Below are positions 35,836 to 50,688 of a stretch of 64,000 bases of DNA, in pieces. The number at the start of each line of letters is the position of its first letter. Position 1 is the stretch's first letter. The position numbers and the translations under genes are program-made. Below the pieces are notes generated by a model that saw only the letters and a program-made list of their open reading frames with translations, was not told the DNA's origin and did no database searches. The stretch lies in the sequence record OM319461.1, one strand, 5' to 3'.

Positions 35836-37809
35836 TTATTTCTCTGTAGCTGCCATCCATGTAACTTTCATGGATACTGCTTCTTGTGCAATTGAACGAT
35901 AAGTACTCGCCAATGCCGAAGCTGTACGTGCCATGGTCTTCAAGGTATGGTTGTGTACTACAAATGATTCACGGACAACTTGTTCTTGTTCGAGAACATC
36001 TGCCTTCTCGGATTGACGTTCCATGAACTTAAAGTCGATGCGGTGAATGCGCTTAACCTTACGCTGGATGTCGCGTGCAGTTTGCTCTAGTTCTTCAGCA
36101 GTCTTCTCCATCACATCAATAGCAGGGAAAACAGAAACTACTTTCTCGATCGCTGCTTCTGTGATGTCAATAGAGCCATAACCATCGGTCTTGGCATTGC
36201 GGATTTTGTTTTGCATCTCAGTGACGTTAATAAAAGAACTTAGCTCAGTTGCTTTAACCAATGGCTCACCGTTTGCTGCACTCAGGCCGGTACCAGTTAC
36301 AGGTTCCTTGACGATGTTAGAGAACACACCAGAAGTATTAATAGCCGCATCGAAGCCAGAAGCAATCTCCAAGCCACGACGATTCATCTCATCATTAATG
36401 CGCTCTAGTTCTTCCTTGTTATCACTACGGAAGCTTTCTTCTGCTTCGTCAGCCAGGCGCTCAAAGAGATCCACATAATCGCCGATGTGATTCAAGCTAC
36501 TCTTGATGGCTTCAGGACCAACACGCTGCTCTGCCACAATAGGAAGACCAGTAGCAATCAAACCATGTATTGGCTTGTTAAATGCCTTCTTCCATTTGTC
36601 AATCAGCTCACCGCGCTCAGTGACACTGAAACGCACCTTGAGGTTAAATGGCGCACCGAAGAAATTAATCACGTTGGTAATGATTGCTTCGATAAAACGA
36701 ATCGCTGCTTTGATTAGACCTTGGCCAGCTTTGCGGATTGCACCGAATAGACCCATTACTACTTCTGCATCGGCCACAGTGCCATCGCGTTTCTCTGGGA
36801 ACTGTGCAAGCAATTCACGGTCTTTCACCGGATGGAGATTACCTAACATGATTGCATCTGTGCGCGAAATACCTTCGGCAAGAAGTTCACGAAGTAATTG
36901 CTCGTTGCGTTCTACGACAGCGAAACGTTCTTCCAACTGATTACCATAAGACTCTGCATCGAACCCTTCACCGAATCCTTCGACATCATGGCCTTCTTCT
37001 GACCAGTCTTGTGCAAAACTAGTTAGGTTCTGGTCTTCACGCATAGCTTCTTCACGGGACTTAACTTCTTTGCCATAGAATGCGTTAATAAAGGCAACTA
37101 GTGGCTGACGAGTAATACTACCCTGCATTGCTGAAACTACTTGGTTTTCCACAAGCATCATGAACTTACTATCTGTGATGTATTCGAACTTCATGTTACC
37201 ACGATACATCTCGAACATATCGGTAACAACCGAACGAACGACGCGATGGTAAGCCTGCATTGTCTCTGGTGGTACTTCTTTAAGTGCTGCATCTAAAGCA
37301 TCATAGATGCGGTCAGTTAGTTGATCGATCAGACGCGTAGGACTACGCATATAGTTGATATCAGAGAAGTATGTTAGAATCTCACGACGATTCGTAAATA
37401 CAACTTCCATGATGTAGTAGAATGCCTGATGGAAAACATGCTCGTCTTTATACATGCGGTTTTCTTTATACTCTGCTTCTACATAGTTGTATGCCGTAAG
37501 CATCTCAAACAAAATGTAAAGAGGGTCTTTGGCAATACGCAGACGATGTTGGTAAACCAGACGGGCCATTTCCAAAGCCAGGGTTTCATCTACCATTTGG
37601 TATTTGGCAATCTTGGCGATCTCTTGTTTGGCAATAGGAAGAACTTCTACAGACCAGCGAGTTAGGAACTCATGGTTATCGTCTGTCATCACCAATGGAA
37701 GGTGCTGGTTAACAATCAGTGCTGTTGCCATAGACATTGGTGAGCCTACGTTGAAATGCAGAGAGCCCGCACCAAGGGCAACGTTCTGAAGGATTTTATC
37801 TTGGTTCAT
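35836..37809 (-). CDS. Virion head protein (657 aa): N-terminal helical domain plus C-terminal head-paralog-like domain
   Basis: Internal HDVEG-FGEG-FDAES linker followed by a paralog-type amphipathic helix. Confidence 0.75.
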   Translation of the reverse strand: MNQDKILQNVALGAGSLHFNVGSPMSMATALIVNQHLPLVMTDDNHEFLTRWSVEVLPIAKQEIAKIAKYQMVDETLALEMARLVYQHRLRIAKDPLYILFEMLTAYNYVEAEYKENRMYKDEHVFHQAFYYIMEVVFTNRREILTYFSDINYMRSPTRLIDQLTDRIYDALDAALKEVPPETMQAYHRVVRSVVTDMFEMYRGNMKFEYITDSKFMMLVENQVVSAMQGSITRQPLVAFINAFYGKEVKSREEAMREDQNLTSFAQDWSEEGHDVEGFGEGFDAESYGNQLEERFAVVERNEQLLRELLAEGISRTDAIMLGNLHPVKDRELLAQFPEKRDGTVADAEVVMGLFGAIRKAGQGLIKAAIRFIEAIITNVINFFGAPFNLKVRFSVTERGELIDKWKKAFNKPIHGLIATGLPIVAEQRVGPEAIKSSLNHIGDYVDLFERLADEAEESFRSDNKEELERINDEMNRRGLEIASGFDAAINTSGVFSNIVKEPVTGTGLSAANGEPLVKATELSSFINVTEMQNKIRNAKTDGYGSIDITEAAIEKVVSVFPAIDVMEKTAEELEQTARDIQRKVKRIHRIDFKFMERQSEKADVLEQEQVVRESFVVHNHTLKTMARTASALASTYRSIAQEAVSMKVTWMAATEK

Positions 37810-37813
37810 TTGT

Positions 37814-39076
37814 TTAAACTCCGTGGTTTAGTCGCTCTGCGGCAACACGCAGTTCGCTGTTTGCGAAATGCTCTAATAGTTTTTGGGTAGTGATACTACG
37901 GTATTTTTTACGGCCAGTTGGGCCAAAGGTAGCTTGTAGGAATTCCCATAGGCCACGCTGGTCTTCGCCGTATTTAAGTAAGCGCTTGTCCATCTCGTCT
38001 ACTTGACGAAGAATTTCTTTCTTGTCTTTTTCGTCAACATACTTCAGATTTTGAATGATGCCTTTACGAATGACTTTATGGCGCTGTTTGGTTTTATCAT
38101 AGATATCAAACTGCAAATCGAACGAGGCCAGAACCAACAATGTGACTGGGAAATAAATCAAACTCGCAAGTATGCACAAGACGGTTACCAGTACAGATAA
38201 CCAGCGATTGTTGGAAAGCTGGTTTAAATCCCCGACCCAGTCCTCGATCTTGTAGATGAAGCTCGATACTTGGTTACCATAGCCCTGTTGGATTGCAAAT
38301 CGGTCAGCCAGGAATTCCCAGCCACGCATATCATAAGCAGGCAAACCAAGTTGCGACTTGGCATTATCTGTAGCCTCTTTGAAAAGAACGATTGATAGCT
38401 GGTCCTGAGTGGTAGCTGTCTTGGCTTCGTCCAGTCTTTTTAAATCACCTTTACGCAATTGCTTCTCAGTCAGGAACGCAACTCGCTTTTCTGGTGTTGG
38501 CTGCATGAATGCTTCTTTTGCCAAGAAGTCCATGTAGTAGTTCGTTGACATTGCATAATCAAGCATTGCGTAGAAGTAGAACACATGGCCGAGTTCATGT
38601 AGGATACCGCCGACTAGCTCACCGGCTGTAAATGTTTTATGATCGTTCATAAACCATTCGCCGACACCGATATCGTGCATTATCTCAGAGAACCAACCGC
38701 CAATACGGCCATTCTTGAAATCAACGAAACCGAGCTTAGCTTCTTCTGGTCCCTTAACGCCAACGTATTCCTGGTAATTCACTGATTGACCACGAGCGCC
38801 AAGAAATACATGATTGGCATCCATTACTGGCGTCATTACCCAAAGGTCCATGTTATTATCGCCAGACCGATATTTAAAACGAGCAGTGATGCCCGTTTCT
38901 TCTTTTACGATTTTTATGAAGTCAGAACGCTCGAGATCTTTTTTGCCAATACGACCATTGGCTCTCATGCGCTTCAACTCTGCTTCCAACCTTGGTCCAA
39001 GTTCTGACTTAGACCATAGAGATTCAGTATCAAAGCCGTCGCCAAAATACGAACCCATTTCTTCGTGTGTAAACAT
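37814..39076 (-). CDS. Virion protein with HEXXH zinc-metallopeptidase motif and TM segment (phiKZ gp84-like)
   Basis: ILHELGHVF, EFLADRFA, hydrophobic WLSVLVTVLCILASLIYFPVTLLVLA; GFDTES near the N-terminus. Confidence 0.75.
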   Translation of the reverse strand: MFTHEEMGSYFGDGFDTESLWSKSELGPRLEAELKRMRANGRIGKKDLERSDFIKIVKEETGITARFKYRSGDNNMDLWVMTPVMDANHVFLGARGQSVNYQEYVGVKGPEEAKLGFVDFKNGRIGGWFSEIMHDIGVGEWFMNDHKTFTAGELVGGILHELGHVFYFYAMLDYAMSTNYYMDFLAKEAFMQPTPEKRVAFLTEKQLRKGDLKRLDEAKTATTQDQLSIVLFKEATDNAKSQLGLPAYDMRGWEFLADRFAIQQGYGNQVSSFIYKIEDWVGDLNQLSNNRWLSVLVTVLCILASLIYFPVTLLVLASFDLQFDIYDKTKQRHKVIRKGIIQNLKYVDEKDKKEILRQVDEMDKRLLKYGEDQRGLWEFLQATFGPTGRKKYRSITTQKLLEHFANSELRVAAERLNHGV

Positions 39077-39155
39077 TATCTTTACTCTTGTTTTTCTGTT
39101 CGAACAGGGTGAGTAAATTATTTAGTCACCTATCTAATTAGCGGAGACAGTTAAG

Positions 39156-40883
39156 ATGACCAAACCAAGAGAGATCATGTCTCACTGCATGTTTACGACC
39201 TATATGCGCAACCAAAACAGCCGTGTAGAAGATGCAGTTTTAATCAAAGAACGATTACGATGTAAAGAGACTGGCCGTGAAAAGCCACGCATTCGTATCG
39301 CTACAAACGTACAGCGTCCTTACTGGGTATCTAAACCAGAAGTACAGAAACAACATACACAAAAGCGTGAGTTCGAATATGCACACAACCTAGAGATGCG
39401 TACTTGTACTCAGGCAGAACTTCCTTTACGTGTTGCCAAGGCAATTGGCTTTAAAGGTGGTTACCAAGCACTATCTAAATCTTGTCGCTCTCCTTATATC
39501 TACGGTACAGACATCTCAGTATCTGTTTTAGAGAAACACAAGCTAGACAAGGCAAACCAGGCAGTAAACGGTTCATGGGTTCCTGACTACTCAATTGCCG
39601 TGATGGACTTTGAGACAAACACTCACTCAAAGGACGAAGAAATCATCTCTGGTGCAATCTCTATGAAAGACAAAGCTGTGATTGTAGTATCACAAGACTT
39701 TGTTGCGAACATTCCTAATCTGGAAGAACGTGTACTAGAGATGTGTAACAAGTACCTAGAAGAAGATATCAAGAAGCGCGATATCAAAATCAAAGTACAC
39801 GTTGTACCAAACGATTTCGAAGTTGCAAAGAAACTTATGTTTTATGCACACATGTGGAAACCAGACTTCCTGACATTCTGGAACATGAACTTCGATATTA
39901 AGAAGATGATGCAGGCATGTGAACGCCACGACAAAGATCCTGCCTTCATCTTTAGTGATCCAAACGTACCAGCACATTACCGCTTCTTTAACTATCGTGA
40001 AGATGCCGTTAACCGCATTACTGCTTCTGGTAAGAAGATGAACAAGGATCCATCGGATGCTTGGCATGTGGTTGAATGTCCGGCTTCATTTTACGTTATC
40101 GATGCGATGTGTGTATTCCGCATGCTGCGCGTAATCAAAGGTAAACGCCATAGTTACTCATTGGATGCTATTCTAAATGACGAACTAGGTATTCGTAAAC
40201 TTGAGATTCCTGGCGTAGACGGAAACCACAACTTGAACTGGCACCGTTTCATGCAGCTTAACAAGAAAATTGAATACTTGGTATACAACTTGTTTGACTG
40301 TATCTCAGTTGAGTTACTTGATGAAGAGACAACTGACCTGTCTAAGAAAATCGGTCTTTATGCCGATGGTTCTGATTTCAGTTCATTGAGCTCTAACCCT
40401 AAACGTCTAGCTAACGCAATTCACTTGTTCCTAGTTGAGAAAGGTAAAGTTCTTTGTTCTACTGCGGATGACATGACAGAAGAGTTTGACAAGTTTGTAC
40501 TTGATAAGCGTGACTGGATTGTTACCCTAGCAAACGAACTAGCTGATGAATCCGGTATTGCTCTTTACAAAGAGTTGCCTAACCTACTTACTCGTGCAGC
40601 AGTAGGCGTTGCGGATATCGATATCACATCTGGTTACCCTAACGCACAGTTTATCGCAAACGTTTCTAAATCAACTACTCTTGCAGAAGTTTGTTCTATT
40701 TCTGGTCTTAACCGAAATCAAATCAAACAACTTTCTGTTGACCTCATGGCTTGTCCTGCTAATGCTTACGAGATATGTACTCGAGTATTGGAGATGCCAG
40801 AGTTTGACGAAGTCGTTGCAATGTACGATGAAATGGAAGCATCAAACGATGACCGCTTGCAGAACATTCTGGTAGCAGCTTAA
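39156..40883 (+). CDS. Family-B DNA polymerase, exonuclease plus motif A half (phiKZ gp82-like)
   Basis: ExoI VMDFETN, ExoII FWNMNFDI, ExoIII YNLFDC, polB motif A DIDITSGYP; motifs B and C absent. Confidence 0.85.
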   Translation: MTKPREIMSHCMFTTYMRNQNSRVEDAVLIKERLRCKETGREKPRIRIATNVQRPYWVSKPEVQKQHTQKREFEYAHNLEMRTCTQAELPLRVAKAIGFKGGYQALSKSCRSPYIYGTDISVSVLEKHKLDKANQAVNGSWVPDYSIAVMDFETNTHSKDEEIISGAISMKDKAVIVVSQDFVANIPNLEERVLEMCNKYLEEDIKKRDIKIKVHVVPNDFEVAKKLMFYAHMWKPDFLTFWNMNFDIKKMMQACERHDKDPAFIFSDPNVPAHYRFFNYREDAVNRITASGKKMNKDPSDAWHVVECPASFYVIDAMCVFRMLRVIKGKRHSYSLDAILNDELGIRKLEIPGVDGNHNLNWHRFMQLNKKIEYLVYNLFDCISVELLDEETTDLSKKIGLYADGSDFSSLSSNPKRLANAIHLFLVEKGKVLCSTADDMTEEFDKFVLDKRDWIVTLANELADESGIALYKELPNLLTRAAVGVADIDITSGYPNAQFIANVSKSTTLAEVCSISGLNRNQIKQLSVDLMACPANAYEICTRVLEMPEFDEVVAMYDEMEASNDDRLQNILVAA

Positions 40884-45862: not shown

Positions 45863-46201
45863 ATGAATAACAACCAGCAAAATCCACTTACGTGGAACGA
45901 CTGTATCGAAGTCCGCCAAGCATATCTGACAGCCTTTGAAGAAGCAAAATCTGTACTACTCAATATCGGCATCAATGCAGCTTCGACAAATCAGACACAA
46001 CTAAAACAGCGTGCTGATAACTGCCTGCACCAACTTGCAGTACTTGAAGATCAAGTAAACAAGTACATGTCCGACAAAGTTCACCTACTTACAATGGACA
46101 CCCCATTAACTGCCGATCAAACACCAATGGCATATGCGATTCATTCGTACCATACATTGGCCATCGGTGAAATCGTGAAAACCATGGAGTCATTTCAATA
46201 A
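45863..46201 (+). CDS. Hypothetical protein (112 aa)
   Basis: GGAG SD; TAATG coupling to the next gene. Confidence 0.75.
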   Translation: MNNNQQNPLTWNDCIEVRQAYLTAFEEAKSVLLNIGINAASTNQTQLKQRADNCLHQLAVLEDQVNKYMSDKVHLLTMDTPLTADQTPMAYAIHSYHTLAIGEIVKTMESFQ

Positions 46202-47670
46202 TGGAAAATGATAACAAACCAAATCTTCGTTTACCTATTTCCCAATTCGACAAAGACGAAGAAATCAAAAACAAAGAATTCCCCTTGCGTGCGCCAGGGG
46301 AACAACTGAATCTAAGCGAACAAAAGACTGCACTCTACAAAGAAGTAGAGCAGTCTGGTTCACGCAAACCAAATGAAAAGCAGGTTCAGCGTTTCCGCAT
46401 GATCAACGATGCCGAGAACCAGGCGTTCTGGCAAGAGGAAGAAAACTACTCTGATATCGTAGAAGATACGGATAAGCTAGCTCAGTCTCTTGAAGTAGAC
46501 GGCGACACGATCGCTCCTAAGCGACTTACTCCTGTTCTTCATGACGAAGGTCAGGTGCTAGGTAATGCTTTCCTACAAGCTTTACGTGCAGTTACTAAAA
46601 ACGGCGGTCATGCACAAGACTACATGTACTCGTCTGGCTTTTGGTTGAAGATCGGTGACTTTGATGCAGAGAAATGTTTCCGTACAGCATCTAAACTAAA
46701 AGATGCTCGTGATAACATCGGTATTGCTACAAACTCTATTTTGTTCTCTACTGATGACGTTCACATCCGTACTGTTATCGTTGACTTCATTCTAGACCAT
46801 GCTCTTGATTCAAACCTACAGGGTTGGCAAGATCGAGCTACTCTAGAAGAAGCACTCTTGGTTACGGATACCGAGCGTCTAATGGGCCTTGCACTTGATG
46901 CTATGTATCCTGATGGCTACCCATTAATCCAGGACTGTAAGAACAAGTTCTCTGATGAAAAGAAATGTGACTACATTACACTGCCGCCAGAAAACAAACT
47001 TGACGAGATCTCTAAACTTAACTTTATGCGCACTATGGTTCTACTGCCTCATCGCTTTGGTGCAGAACAGAAACGTTTCTTGCGTAAAGAAAAAGTTACT
47101 CTAGAAGAAGTCAAGGAGTACCAAGAGAAACTATTGAACTTTAATAACTCTTCTCTTGTTATCGGTACTTATGACTTTGGTCCAACGAAGATCCGTTTGC
47201 GTGGTCGTACACCGTCTTATCTTCAATACAAGGGCGAAGGTCTAACTTGGATTGCTAATGTTATCGATGTCGCAGAGAGTCTAACAGCTCCTACTGCGAA
47301 CAAGAAGCAAGAAGCAGAACAACGTAACGAACTTATTGTTAGTCGTGTTCGTCAAGTTATGACACAGCGTCAGATGTGCTGGATTGAACGTGTTAGTATG
47401 AACGGTGCTTATACTGACAGTCGTGAAGATATCGAGTCTGCTCTAGCTATTCTTGCAGAAGATCGCCAACTGGCTGAACGTGTTAAGTCCGATATTCGTA
47501 CGTTTACCAAATCACAGATCCACGGCCTTTGTGCTATTCCTAACTGGACATGTCCTTCTTGTAAGAAGACACAACCAGATGTTGAAGAGAAGATTAACCT
47601 TATCCCTATCTCGATGAGTGCTTATTTTTTCAGTATCCTGGTGGTCCGAGCTTATCAGTCGACGATCTAA
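46201..47670 (+). CDS. Conserved protein, putative tail/baseplate assembly chaperone (489 aa) with C-terminal CPSC
   Basis: DAMYPDGYP, IPNWTCPSC; ends ...AYFF on a slippery heptamer. Confidence 0.75.
   Translation: MENDNKPNLRLPISQFDKDEEIKNKEFPLRAPGEQLNLSEQKTALYKEVEQSGSRKPNEKQVQRFRMINDAENQAFWQEEENYSDIVEDTDKLAQSLEVDGDTIAPKRLTPVLHDEGQVLGNAFLQALRAVTKNGGHAQDYMYSSGFWLKIGDFDAEKCFRTASKLKDARDNIGIATNSILFSTDDVHIRTVIVDFILDHALDSNLQGWQDRATLEEALLVTDTERLMGLALDAMYPDGYPLIQDCKNKFSDEKKCDYITLPPENKLDEISKLNFMRTMVLLPHRFGAEQKRFLRKEKVTLEEVKEYQEKLLNFNNSSLVIGTYDFGPTKIRLRGRTPSYLQYKGEGLTWIANVIDVAESLTAPTANKKQEAEQRNELIVSRVRQVMTQRQMCWIERVSMNGAYTDSREDIESALAILAEDRQLAERVKSDIRTFTKSQIHGLCAIPNWTCPSCKKTQPDVEEKINLIPISMSAYFFSILVVRAYQSTI
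47625..47631 (+). promoter_or_regulatory. Putative -1 programmed ribosomal frameshift site T-TTT-TTC
   Basis: X-XXY-YYZ heptamer correctly phased (TAT TTT TTC); the -1 frame is open from 47598 to 48104. Confidence 0.7.
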
Positions 47671-48104
47671 AAACACCAAGAAGCATCCGTTATGTGCCAC
47701 CTCAAGGTACAGCCCAAAACATTGTTAATCGACTATTGCAAATAGAGATGACAGGTAAGGCATCGGATGCTTTTATTGGTAGGATCATTACTGAACATGA
47801 AATGGGTTACGTTGACTATGCGAATGATCGGTATTACAATCCGATTCAGTCTGTAACCCACCACCAGACGAAGGAACGCGATACTGTACTCAAGCATCAG
47901 ATCAAACGCATACTTAGATCCGGTGTTTGTGAAAAAGCTCAAATGGGGCTTAAGGACATACTTGCCCTAGACTTGGGGTTTTATGATTATCTCATGAACA
48001 TGATCGAGGAACTAAACATTGAGGAAGCAGAGCGAACTCAAGAACTAGAAGCCTCAGTTCAAGATGCAATTACAAAACTCAAAGAGAAAAAAGAAAAAGA
48101 TTAA
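47625..48104 (+). CDS. -1 frame extension (ORF track 47694..48104), probably expressed as a C-terminal fusion
   Basis: No strong SD at GTG 47694 or ATG 47748; frame is continuous back to the slippery site. Confidence 0.65.
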   Translation, partial: FFQYPGGPSLSVDDLKTPRSIRYVPPQGTAQNIVNRLLQIEMTGKASDAFIGRIITEHEMGYVDYANDRYYNPIQSVTHHQTKERDTVLKHQIKRILRSGVCEKAQMGLKDILALDLGFYDYLMNMIEELNIEEAERTQELEASVQDAITKLKEKKEKD

Positions 48105-48108
48105 TATA

Positions 48109-48136
48109 CTACCTCCTCCCGCTTGGGAGGAGGTAG
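48109..48136. terminator. Bidirectional terminator
   Basis: Perfect 12-bp stem ctacctcctccc / gggaggaggtag. Confidence 0.8.
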
Positions 48137-48142
48137 GTATTA

Positions 48143-48637
48143 TTACATTACATAATCGGCAAAACCAAGCTCAACAGCTTTGTCACCCATGCAGTAGAAA
48201 TCACGATCGAGATACTTGTCCATCTCTTCTTTTGTGAATCCTGCATCTTCTGCGAAGTGGTCATAAACAATCTCGTAGTAGTAACGCATATTGCCAAGGC
48301 CTTTCTCGGTAAGTTCAGCACCACCGTTAGGACCATGAATCATCATCTGACAATCACGAGTAATAGCACGTTTACCTGTAGCGGCACCTGCCACAAGAAG
48401 ATAACAACCAGCTGACATTGCCTTACCAATCGCAAGAACGTTAATCACACAACGGTTACGCTTCATCGCATCACGAATTGCAAGCATGGTTCGACAACAA
48501 CCACCATACGTACTGATGACCAGAAGGATAGGCTCTTGGCTTTCCTTTTCTAATTCATCTAAACGTTTGATGACCTCTTTACCGATACCCATGTCCACGC
48601 CGCAGGTTAAAAACACAGTACGTTCGACATTGATCAT
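48143..48637 (-). CDS. clpP: ClpP-like serine protease with intact triad (164 aa)
   Basis: RTVFLT, ISTYGG, GKAMSAG (Ser), MMIHGP (His), LDRDFY (Asp), AVELGFAD. Confidence 0.88.
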   Translation of the reverse strand: MINVERTVFLTCGVDMGIGKEVIKRLDELEKESQEPILLVISTYGGCCRTMLAIRDAMKRNRCVINVLAIGKAMSAGCYLLVAGAATGKRAITRDCQMMIHGPNGGAELTEKGLGNMRYYYEIVYDHFAEDAGFTKEEMDKYLDRDFYCMGDKAVELGFADYVM

Positions 48638-49119
48638 GCGGTCAACTCCTCTAGTGGACGGAAACCGAACTTCATTACTTCTGGTGCACGAGGTAGTTCT
48701 TTTTCCTTATGCATTTCTTCAGAGGTACGAGGTAAGTTAAATGCCTTATCTAGGATCTCGTTCATGCGTTGACGTAACTCAGTTTGAGCAACGGCTGCAT
48801 TGTTAAGATCTTTATAAGCACCATGACCTACAAAGTCTGGACTAGAAAACGCGAAGATACCTTGAGATGTAAGATAACGTTTGTCCTCCTCTACTGCAGC
48901 TGCAATAAGCAAAGCACCAGAGGTATTACCTGCCATGATAGCTACACGAATATCTACGTTAGGGAACATCTCGATGATGTTCTTAGCAGCTAGTGCGTCA
49001 TGGGGGTTATACAGAGCATCGTAGACACAGACTACGAAAGGACCTGTCATACCCTGCTCCGTGAAACGCATCAACTCTGTCATCAGTCCTTGGACCGATA
49101 GGGTTGAAGTTTTATACAT
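48634..49119 (-). CDS. Catalytically dead ClpP paralog (ClpR-like; 161 aa; start moved to MYKTST)
   Basis: GNTSGALLIAA, KRYL, FAFSSP, QRMNEIL and RAPEVMKFGF align to ClpP, but Ser/His/Asp map to Thr/Ser/Lys; AGGA SD. Confidence 0.7.
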   Translation of the reverse strand: MYKTSTLSVQGLMTELMRFTEQGMTGPFVVCVYDALYNPHDALAAKNIIEMFPNVDIRVAIMAGNTSGALLIAAAVEEDKRYLTSQGIFAFSSPDFVGHGAYKDLNNAAVAQTELRQRMNEILDKAFNLPRTSEEMHKEKELPRAPEVMKFGFRPLEELTA

Positions 49120-49179
49120 GGAATGTTCCTTTTTGATCAAAAAAAAAATAATGGCCATAAGATTAGACAGCCTAGTTAC

Positions 49180-50688
49180 CTAGGCTGCCTTTAGAATAAA
49201 GCCAGTTTCAATGGCCTTGAAATCTTTACTTCTGAAACGAACATCTTGACGGCGTTTGTTATCATAGATACGATGGGCACTAATGCGCTTATTCGTAAGA
49301 TAACAGAACACTGGATCACGATCAGGATAACGCTTGATTGGACGCAAGCGACCCATGATCTGACGCGATAGCTGCGTAGAGCTTAGACCTACTGTCAGCC
49401 AGCCCACAGAGAGGTTAGGGATGTCTACGCCCGTACCTGCACCTTTGGGTGTACTTACAATAATATCGCGCTCATAGAGCTCCTCGTCCTTGGCACCGTG
49501 GATATAACACCCAACGGTCAAGTCACCGACTTCTTGTCTAAAACGTTCGGTTACCAGACGACACATTTCTTTTGTAGAGCAAATCATCAAGAACTTGCAT
49601 CCTTCTTTATAGTTCTTCATAAAAGAACCACGAAGCATACCAGCCAAGAAATCAAGATACTGTTCGAGTATCTTTGGTTTCTTCATGATGGATTGTTCAT
49701 ACTTAACATGAGAGTATCCACGGAAACCCTTGAACTTGATTACGTTCTTTGGATCATACATGTCATAGAGGACAGATCGCACACAGATGTGTTTGTTGTC
49801 TTCTGATTTCCATCGATCCTTTTTAGGGAATACTCGTTCATACACTTTGTTAATAAAGGCATTGTCTGAAACTAGCGTAGCAGATAGGAATATTACGCGT
49901 GGCACATGAGTATAAATAACTTGGCGAACCAAGCTATGTATTGATTCATGTACCTCATCTCGAATAATCGTACCCACCTCCAAGAACTCAAAAAGATCTT
50001 GAGGAGGAAACTCATAATCGTATTCCATCATCTCTTCGTATGTCTTGTAAAAGTTACGAAGCGTAGTTGCACTAAAGAACAATAACTTGTAGTCTAGCTG
50101 TCCCGCTTTCTGCAACTCAACAACTGCCCGAATACTAGCCGAACCCTGTACCACAACAATATCTGATTTATTCAGATGGGTTTGTTCTGGTATAGAGTTT
50201 AACCAGGTCTTGATGTGACCAGGCTCCATAATAAAGGCGGCGCGTTGCTGACAGTTCATTGCAGTGTTTAAGCCAAGGAAAGACTTACCGAAACCAGTAG
50301 CTGCGTCAATGACGCGGTTAACTTCATCTGTCTTAGACAGGAACTCAACGGCTGGCTTCTGTTTGTCACGTGGTTTGAATTCCTCACGCATGAGGTTTTC
50401 AATTTCCACTGGCTTATACATAGGACGCATTTTAATGTTAAAGTTATCTCTCGACCATCCTGCAAATTCGCAATGACTCAAAAAAGGTTCTAAGTCAGCA
50501 CGAAGGAAACCAAACTCTGTTAAGTCTTGCTTCCAAGTTGCATAGATAGCTTTTGCCTGACGTTTCATCACGCCCGTACGAGGATCTTTAACGTCTTCGA
50601 CTTCGGTTACGGAACCAGCAAACCCACGAATGAGATCTACTTGTTTATCGCCAATAGGGTACACAAAGAACCCATGGCTGTTAACCAC
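49180..50688 (-). CDS. SF2 helicase (phiKZ gp75-like)
   Basis: ATGFGKS, RDEVHE, FLSATL, QIMGRLR. Confidence 0.9.
   Translation of the reverse strand: MVNSHGFFVYPIGDKQVDLIRGFAGSVTEVEDVKDPRTGVMKRQAKAIYATWKQDLTEFGFLRADLEPFLSHCEFAGWSRDNFNIKMRPMYKPVEIENLMREEFKPRDKQKPAVEFLSKTDEVNRVIDAATGFGKSFLGLNTAMNCQQRAAFIMEPGHIKTWLNSIPEQTHLNKSDIVVVQGSASIRAVVELQKAGQLDYKLLFFSATTLRNFYKTYEEMMEYDYEFPPQDLFEFLEVGTIIRDEVHESIHSLVRQVIYTHVPRVIFLSATLVSDNAFINKVYERVFPKKDRWKSEDNKHICVRSVLYDMYDPKNVIKFKGFRGYSHVKYEQSIMKKPKILEQYLDFLAGMLRGSFMKNYKEGCKFLMICSTKEMCRLVTERFRQEVGDLTVGCYIHGAKDEELYERDIIVSTPKGAGTGVDIPNLSVGWLTVGLSSTQLSRQIMGRLRPIKRYPDRDPVFCYLTNKRISAHRIYDNKRRQDVRFRSKDFKAIETGFILKAA

Follow-up and report, generated by a model that had tools for sequence, protein, structure and literature searches.

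Clp proteases serve as a paradigm of gated proteolysis driven by ATP, and they are also targets for drugs. In the ClpP/ClpR cores of cyanobacteria and plastids (ClpP3/ClpR; CLPPR), a catalytic ClpP is accompanied by a ClpP-fold paralogue that lacks the catalytic triad and is maintained under selection, and the ClpP and ClpR genes are adjacent in cyanobacteria. Two ClpP paralogues per core are likewise found in the ClpP1P2 heterotetradecamers of Mycobacterium tuberculosis, Streptomyces, Pseudomonas aeruginosa, Listeria, and Chlamydia. The present analysis concerns a pair of this kind, one active and one dead, in a nucleus-forming jumbo vibriophage; such phages are under development for aquaculture therapy. 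The axial loop and helix A of ClpP serve as plug and gate of the pore and as its link to the ATPase (PMC6853987, from which the residue numbering was also taken). ClpP genes are distributed patchily in jumbo phages, for which host targets have been proposed (Iyer et al. 2021, PMC7824862), and Rak2-like phages such as Atu_ph07 carry Clp gene sets (PMC6102473). No discussion of a dead ClpP partner in phages was found in the literature.

The window, that is, the whole stretch of 64,000 nucleotides analyzed here, belongs to record OM319461.1, Vibrio phage C-ZP2022 (287,943 bp; host V. parahaemolyticus), in which the window starts at record base 124,001; the region matches this phage at 100% identity. 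The features of the locus are as follows (window positions).

48634–49119, minus strand: gene of the dead ClpP-fold subunit, an open reading frame of 161 aa (MYKTS...); GenBank CZP2022_184, annotated as hypothetical
48143–48637, minus strand: gene of the catalytic ClpP subunit, 164 aa; CZP2022_183, annotated as 'ATP-dependent Clp proteolytic subunit'
48634–48637, minus strand: ATGA, read from the sequence, in which the TGA stop of the 161-aa gene overlaps the ATG of the 164-aa gene
48646–48651, minus strand: Shine-Dalgarno-like GAGGAG for the 164-aa gene, within the 3' end of the 161-aa gene (...AGAGGAGTTGACCGC-ATG)
49126–49131, minus strand: Shine-Dalgarno-like AAGGAA, read from the sequence, 6 nt 5' of the ATG of the 161-aa gene
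49143–49172, minus strand: weak hairpin with a T10 run after it, in the interval from the helicase stop to the pair, a possible attenuator by consensus match only
48109–48136, no strand assigned: 12-bp GC-rich hairpin (12 pairs, 8 of them G-C) with T-rich tails on both strands, between the ClpP gene and a convergent 136-aa ORF
49180–50688, minus strand: SF2 (SWI/SNF/UvsW-like) helicase, the conserved upstream neighbor of the pair (Pfam ResIII/DEAD, annotation, and synteny)

A first-pass annotation of this DNA had described two ClpP-fold genes overlapping by ATGA, and the two minus-strand ORFs indeed share positions 48634–48637. The overlap is consistent with translational coupling of the 161-aa and 164-aa genes; a search for RNA-seq runs covering the region returned none. 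The record of phage pir03 (L003:3962–4486) places the start of the dead subunit 13 codons farther upstream, which gives 174 aa. Since the Shine-Dalgarno-like element is positioned for the downstream start, and since relatives of the 161-aa protein begin with MYK or MYT at that position, the 161-aa start is favored. The GC-rich hairpin at 48109–48136 is likely to be a bidirectional terminator that ends the transcript of the ClpP pair. Convergent to the pair lie three plus-strand genes (112, 489, and 136 aa; window 45863–48104) without a Pfam match, whose synteny with the pair extends to most related loci; the 489-aa protein carries a CxxC-containing segment at its end. This block may be what the first-pass annotation called a frameshift locus, but its genes are conserved as separate units in BONAISHI and the other relatives.

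The 164-aa protein matched Pfam PF00574 over residues 4–164 (94 bits against a cut-off of 20.2; E 1.3e-26) and dozens of solved ClpPs in the PDB (E 4e-14 to about 1e-13), and it stayed under the NCBIfam thresholds for ClpP equivalogs (TIGR00493, 74 bits versus 308.6; NF001368, 80 versus 249). Peptidase_S49, the SppA type, gave no Pfam match, and SDH_protease reached only E 0.12. The protein was aligned with nine clade relatives and E. coli ClpP, the latter sequence being taken from a contaminating host contig within the phage collection. G68, S97, H122, and D171 (E. coli numbering) are all present and invariant in the 10 clade active ClpPs including the 164-aa protein, in agreement with the earlier statement that one gene of the pair has Ser, His, and Asp intact. 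The clade active ClpPs start at about residue 37 of the E. coli precursor, without the propeptide, the axial loop (14–31), and most of helix A. The pocket that docks ClpX and ClpA (the activator or IGF-loop pocket; residues as in PMC6853987) is also altered. According to the alignment alone, the 164-aa protein has L48 replaced with D, F49 with E, A52 with K, Y62 with V, and F82 with R in this IGF/LGF-loop pocket, and in most clade active subunits the pocket is charged or polar (D/E/Q/R/K at L48, E/A/K/Q/R at F49, and R/T/K/S at F82); these pocket mappings, as well as those of the 'sensor' residues, come from alignments at 15–30% identity and could shift by one residue. The 'sensor' pair D169-R170 is conserved in the active subunits, which is compatible with ring stacking.

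The upstream partner had been said to align with ClpP over its length. By BLASTP, it did not: the comparison of the 161-aa with the 164-aa protein was not significant (E 25), and the match of the 161-aa protein to Pfam ClpP (E 0.0076) was under the cut-off. Profiles and structure, however, bore the claim out. When 1.84 billion representatives were searched exhaustively with HMMER, only 15 relatives of the 161-aa protein were recovered, all of them from phages; IMG/VR scans with the 161-aa and 164-aa proteins found no relatives, and a word-indexed protein search returned nothing beyond the query's own cluster. The resulting 16-sequence profile matched PDB ClpPs at E 1e-10 over positions 10–156. 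In the profile comparison of the 161-aa family with the clade active ClpPs by hhalign, from an alignment in which the active domain of a fusion protein had been trimmed off, the probability was 95.4% and the E value 1.8e-8 over 135 columns. AlphaFold2 with the family alignment gave a pLDDT of 93.3 and a pTM of 0.86, and the single-sequence prediction gave a pLDDT of 57.6. The best 50 Foldseek matches of the 161-aa model in the PDB were all ClpP (probability 1.00, TM 0.63–0.75). Judged by these profiles and by the predicted model, the 161-aa protein has the ClpP fold.

The catalytic triad of this partner had been mapped to Thr, Ser, and Lys. The latter two assignments stood, with Ser92 at the position of His122 and Lys140 at that of Asp171, but the equivalent of Ser97 depends on the aligner, being Gly64 with hhalign, Asn65 with hmmsearch, and Thr66 in the first-pass annotation. 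Across 19 members of the dead-subunit family, no conserved nucleophile, His, or Asp was found at the triad positions. The oxyanion loop 'SPGG' of ClpP is replaced by a family motif, NPHDAL, and the conserved motifs AAAV..KR, GxGTYKDL, and a C-terminal G-F/L are counterparts of structural motifs of ClpP. In BONAISHI ORF86, a dead subunit, a His persists at the His122 position, which looks like a relic. The dead subunit encoded at L021 still yields a recorded Pfam ClpP match, which shows that degeneration is uneven across the family. The 161-aa protein begins at the equivalent of about residues 37–42 of the E. coli precursor and is devoid of the propeptide, the axial loop, and most of helix A; the first-pass annotation was thus right that both proteins lack the N-terminal loop extension. 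The IGF-loop pocket is not conserved in the dead subunits either, the equivalents of L48, F49, and Y62 being polar, charged, or variable. Many dead subunits have K-E at the ring-ring 'sensor' position, as opposed to D169-R170 in the active subunits, and one might speculate that this is a complementary charge swap between the two. Poly-Asp/Glu tails extend the C-termini of four relatives (P0007, P0008, P0013, and P0014) and are absent from the C-ZP2022 protein; in locus L008, a separate, highly acidic 48-codon ORF lies between the two ClpP genes (L008:5516–5662). Such tails may be appendages for regulation or docking.

A survey of co-occurrence in phages, suggested with the first-pass annotation, found the pair together in every locus examined: the dead subunit lies directly upstream of the active ClpP in 14 of 14 (five isolate lineages and nine metagenomic contigs), one of them as a fusion, with pseudo-subunit identities as low as about 22%. 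In 12 of these loci, the genes are joined by an overlap of 1–8 nt or separated by a gap of 2–12 nt. The pair adjoins genes for the non-virion RNA polymerase (nvRNAP) and a helicase, in the order RNAP beta, RNAP beta', helicase, dead subunit, ClpP, and then three opposite-strand genes. The order from RNAP through helicase to the pair is common to C-ZP2022, vB_pir03, vB_VpaM_sm033, BONAISHI, and the Yong phages; both ORFs of the pair are labeled as Clp subunits in BONAISHI (PMC6207643). In a metagenomic relative with a rearranged neighborhood (L021:421–4992), two opposite-strand genes have been inserted between the helicase and the pair, and the dead and active genes remain together. In a syntenic 153-kb phage contig (L006), the dead and then the active subunit are encoded by one continuous ORF of 330 aa (fusion P0015) with a linker of ~10 residues. 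A search for further dead/active fusions found none, P0015 being a singleton (one cluster on two contigs).

Decay of the partner in relatives, which the first-pass annotation had named as a point that would speak against a functional pair, was not seen. Between C-ZP2022 and vB_pir03, compared at a dS of about 0.7, dN/dS was 0.019 for the dead subunit, 0.020 for ClpP, 0.015 for the helicase, and 0.030 for RNAP beta'. The dead subunit is not decaying, and purifying selection on it is as strong as on its essential neighbors. The earlier proposal of a ClpP/ClpR-like pair of a catalytic and a non-catalytic member was upheld, and both members are selected to nearly the same degree. In a maximum-likelihood tree, the dead subunits (support 100/100), the phage active subunits (95/84), and the bacterial ClpPs (91/94) each formed one group, and therefore a single origin before the clade diversified is indicated. 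The branches of the dead subunits are roughly twofold longer than those of the active subunits, and the branching orders are broadly parallel. The tree is a three-way split with long branches, which fits a duplication of the phage ClpP as well as a separate acquisition. An origin of the dead subunit independent of cyanobacterial and plastid ClpR is likely, because the family is found in phages only and is monophyletic, in a tree built without ClpR sequences.

We also looked for ATPase partners in the window and in the rest of the genome. The 64-kb window contains no AAA+ gene, as had been noted before, and tblastn with E. coli ClpX, run over 286 kb of the 288-kb genome, detected no ClpX-like gene (best E 0.037), the scan running up to the last 1.9 kb and over all but scattered N positions. 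The only AAA+ protein among the Walker A ORFs of the genome is a BCS1-like ATPase. This ATPase and a prohead protease lie outside the window (record positions).

38651–39994 (L012:38651–39994), minus strand: BCS1-like AAA+ ATPase, annotated as hypothetical; Pfam AAA E 1.8e-14, BCS1_N E 5.8e-6
227513–228334 (L015:40513–41334), minus strand: phiKZ gp175-type prohead protease, annotated as 'virion structural protein'; Pfam Peptidase_S80 E 4e-53

The BCS1-like protein was considered as a symmetry-matched, dedicated partner of the pair and rejected, because jumbo phages without ClpP commonly have it too and because it went undetected in sm033 and BONAISHI, where the pair is present. No adaptor or ATPase linked to the pair was found in the 14 loci. 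The prohead protease, a type of gene also reported for pir03 (PMC7765460), agrees with the earlier view that head maturation is served by a different protease: because the genome has a separate phiKZ-type S80 enzyme, this function is already covered. Several other observations were made on the record. It contains clusters of isolated N positions, often at multiples of three, for example at record 36308–36796, 63415–64311, 190292–191254, and 282183–283184 (L012–L016), and one cluster coincides with a thymidylate synthase annotated as three CDS (record 282007–282935). Outside the window, record 86186–104599 is annotated as one ORF of 18.4 kb for a 'hypothetical protein' of about 6,100 aa.

BONAISHI encodes chimallin and has been placed in the Chimalliviridae (PMC10587174). 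Erwinia phage RAY has a homologous block of nvRNAP beta-2, nvRNAP beta'-2, and helicase gp250 with no ClpP after it; gp250, the helicase homologue, is a nuclear core protein that localizes to the phage nucleus (PMC10299810). RAY instead encodes a nucleus-localized HslV-family protein and an SspB-like ClpXP adaptor (PMC10299810). Since the corresponding nvRNAP-helicase block of RAY lacks the pair, the latter is a clade-specific addition, and to call it 'inserted' beside the helicase, as the first-pass annotation did, was fair. As an accessory module, the pair belongs to a single clade of nucleus-forming (Chimalliviridae-type) jumbo vibriophages. Elsewhere in the family, other protease-related accessory genes are found, such as the HslV-like and SspB-like genes of RAY, which suggests that a need to control protein turnover recurs among these phages but varies between them.

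On balance, and with moderate confidence, we favor the explanation that the conserved active/dead pair is a hetero-oligomeric, gate-less, unfoldase-independent ClpP/ClpR-like protease. A heteromer of the 161-aa and 164-aa subunits is strongly suggested at the sequence level, because the two genes lie end to end or overlapping in 12 of 14 loci, co-occur in all, have roughly parallel trees, and are naturally fused in one case. Translational coupling would yield both subunits together and in similar amounts, and these would co-assemble into a self-compartmentalized protease like the cyanobacterial and plastid ClpP/ClpR cores. The dead subunit would lower the density of active sites and may shape specificity or assembly. 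Since the axial loop and most of helix A are absent and the ClpX/ClpA pocket is not conserved, we infer a chamber that would be constitutively open and, without a Clp unfoldase, would act on peptides and on unfolded or loosely folded proteins; the pair is probably ATPase-independent. Defence proteins as its substrates, which the first-pass annotation considered possible, are purely conjectural. In ClpP, both chain ends line the same apical inter-subunit pocket (PMC6853987). Because the fusion joins ends located at that pocket, an arrangement of active and dead subunits as neighbors within one ring is favored, and a strict 1:1 alternation within such a ring would need an even number of subunits. 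A bolder version, to which we assign a rather low probability, is that the pair forms a minimal unfoldase-free protease that is not a canonical 7+7 barrel and that provides nucleus-forming phages with a proteolytic compartment of their own, perhaps within the phage nucleus, to which host proteases presumably have no access. If true, this would parallel the nuclear HslV-like protease of RAY.

The favored explanation has to be weighed against a hijack of host unfoldases, which the first-pass annotation had also raised: a phage core would dock host ClpX or ClpA, possibly via the dead subunit, for ATP-dependent degradation of substrates chosen by the phage. To judge from the titles of PDB entries, one subunit type alone binds the ATPase in ClpP1P2 of M. 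tuberculosis and P. aeruginosa. Some pocket positions are more hydrophobic in the dead subunit (F82, with M/L/F/Y; I90; and M92), and the SspB-like ClpXP adaptor of RAY (PMC10299810) shows that manipulation of Clp exists in the family. However, axial loops and most of helix A are missing from both subunits, the equivalents of L48, F49, and Y62 are polar, charged, or variable in both families, and none of the 14 loci has a linked adaptor or ATPase. The loss of the axial loops together with the unconserved L48/F49/F82 pocket makes canonical docking to host ClpX or ClpA less likely than had been supposed, a non-canonical docking of a host unfoldase being conceivable, and we regard the hijack as improbable. 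We attach a similarly small probability to separate action of the two proteins, in which the active subunit would be a homo-oligomeric protease, while the dead one, as a decoy, would cap or poison the ClpP rings of the host or would serve some other target as adaptor or inhibitor. Co-occurrence in 14 of 14 loci, tight coupling, the one fusion, and the survival of the pair through local rearrangement all speak against it. Moreover, since the dead subunit shares only about 15% identity with bacterial ClpP, it is less likely to mix into host rings than with its own partner. Its roughly twofold faster evolution, as read from branch lengths, and the acidic C-terminal tails of several relatives, such as adaptors or inhibitors might have, would fit separate action.

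A role in the virion or in head maturation, with the pair as a ClpP-type prohead or internal-protein protease, is very unlikely, although the 164-aa protein does match PHROG head-maturation families (PHROG 94 etc.; E 6e-16) and NCBIfam Clp_rel_HeadMat (NF045542; E 4.5e-13), and ClpP-type prohead proteases are missing the N-terminal gate too. The NF045542 match scored 49.5 bits against a cut-off of 120, and the 164-aa protein is closer to cellular ClpP than to prohead proteases. Neither a scaffold nor a capsid domain is fused to it, the surrounding genes are those for the non-virion RNAP and the helicase rather than head genes, and the genome has its own phiKZ gp175-type S80 prohead protease (E 4e-53; for the pir03 protease, see PMC7765460).

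If the hetero-oligomeric reading is true, nature has cut a ClpP/ClpR-like pair to about 160 residues per subunit, without a gate, a conserved docking site for an unfoldase, or an ATPase of its own. With so small a system, one could ask what the dead subunit adds to a proteolytic chamber and how far the ClpP fold can function in the absence of an unfoldase. The locus would also represent a module for proteolysis confined to a single clade of nucleus-forming jumbo vibriophages.

Comparison with the known systems sets the phage pair apart from each of them. ClpR is full-length, with N-terminal loops, and its cores are driven by ClpC or ClpX, whereas the phage subunits are ~160 aa, gate-less, and without a conserved docking pocket, in a phage that encodes no Clp ATPase. 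The structures nearest to the 161-aa model, among the best 50 Foldseek matches, are bacterial ClpP1P2 cores. In contrast to the phage pair, ClpP1P2 usually keeps the triad in both paralogues, consists of two stacked homo-heptameric rings, and needs AAA+ partners and intact N-termini. The ClpPs of other jumbo phages are single and longer and are often accompanied by a phage ClpX, ClpA, or ClpS, while the vibriophages have an obligate-looking active/dead pair without a Clp ATPase. E. coli SppA (S49) has tandem ClpP-fold domains and forms an even-numbered ring. Like the fusion P0015, it carries two diverged ClpP-fold domains per chain, a likeness that we take as a lead only; SppA is membrane-anchored and uses a Ser-Lys dyad, whereas the phage active subunit has a classical Ser-His-Asp triad. 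As for the missing gate, N-terminally deleted ClpP was reportedly found by Bewley et al. in 2009 to be active independently of the ATPase. When the N-terminal plug is lost or retracted, as also with ADEP, the ClpP pore admits unfolded proteins without an ATPase (PMC6853987). These openings are made in the laboratory or induced by a drug in a homo-tetradecamer, whereas the truncation in the phage is natural, reaches deeper in that it includes helix A, and comes with a dead partner.
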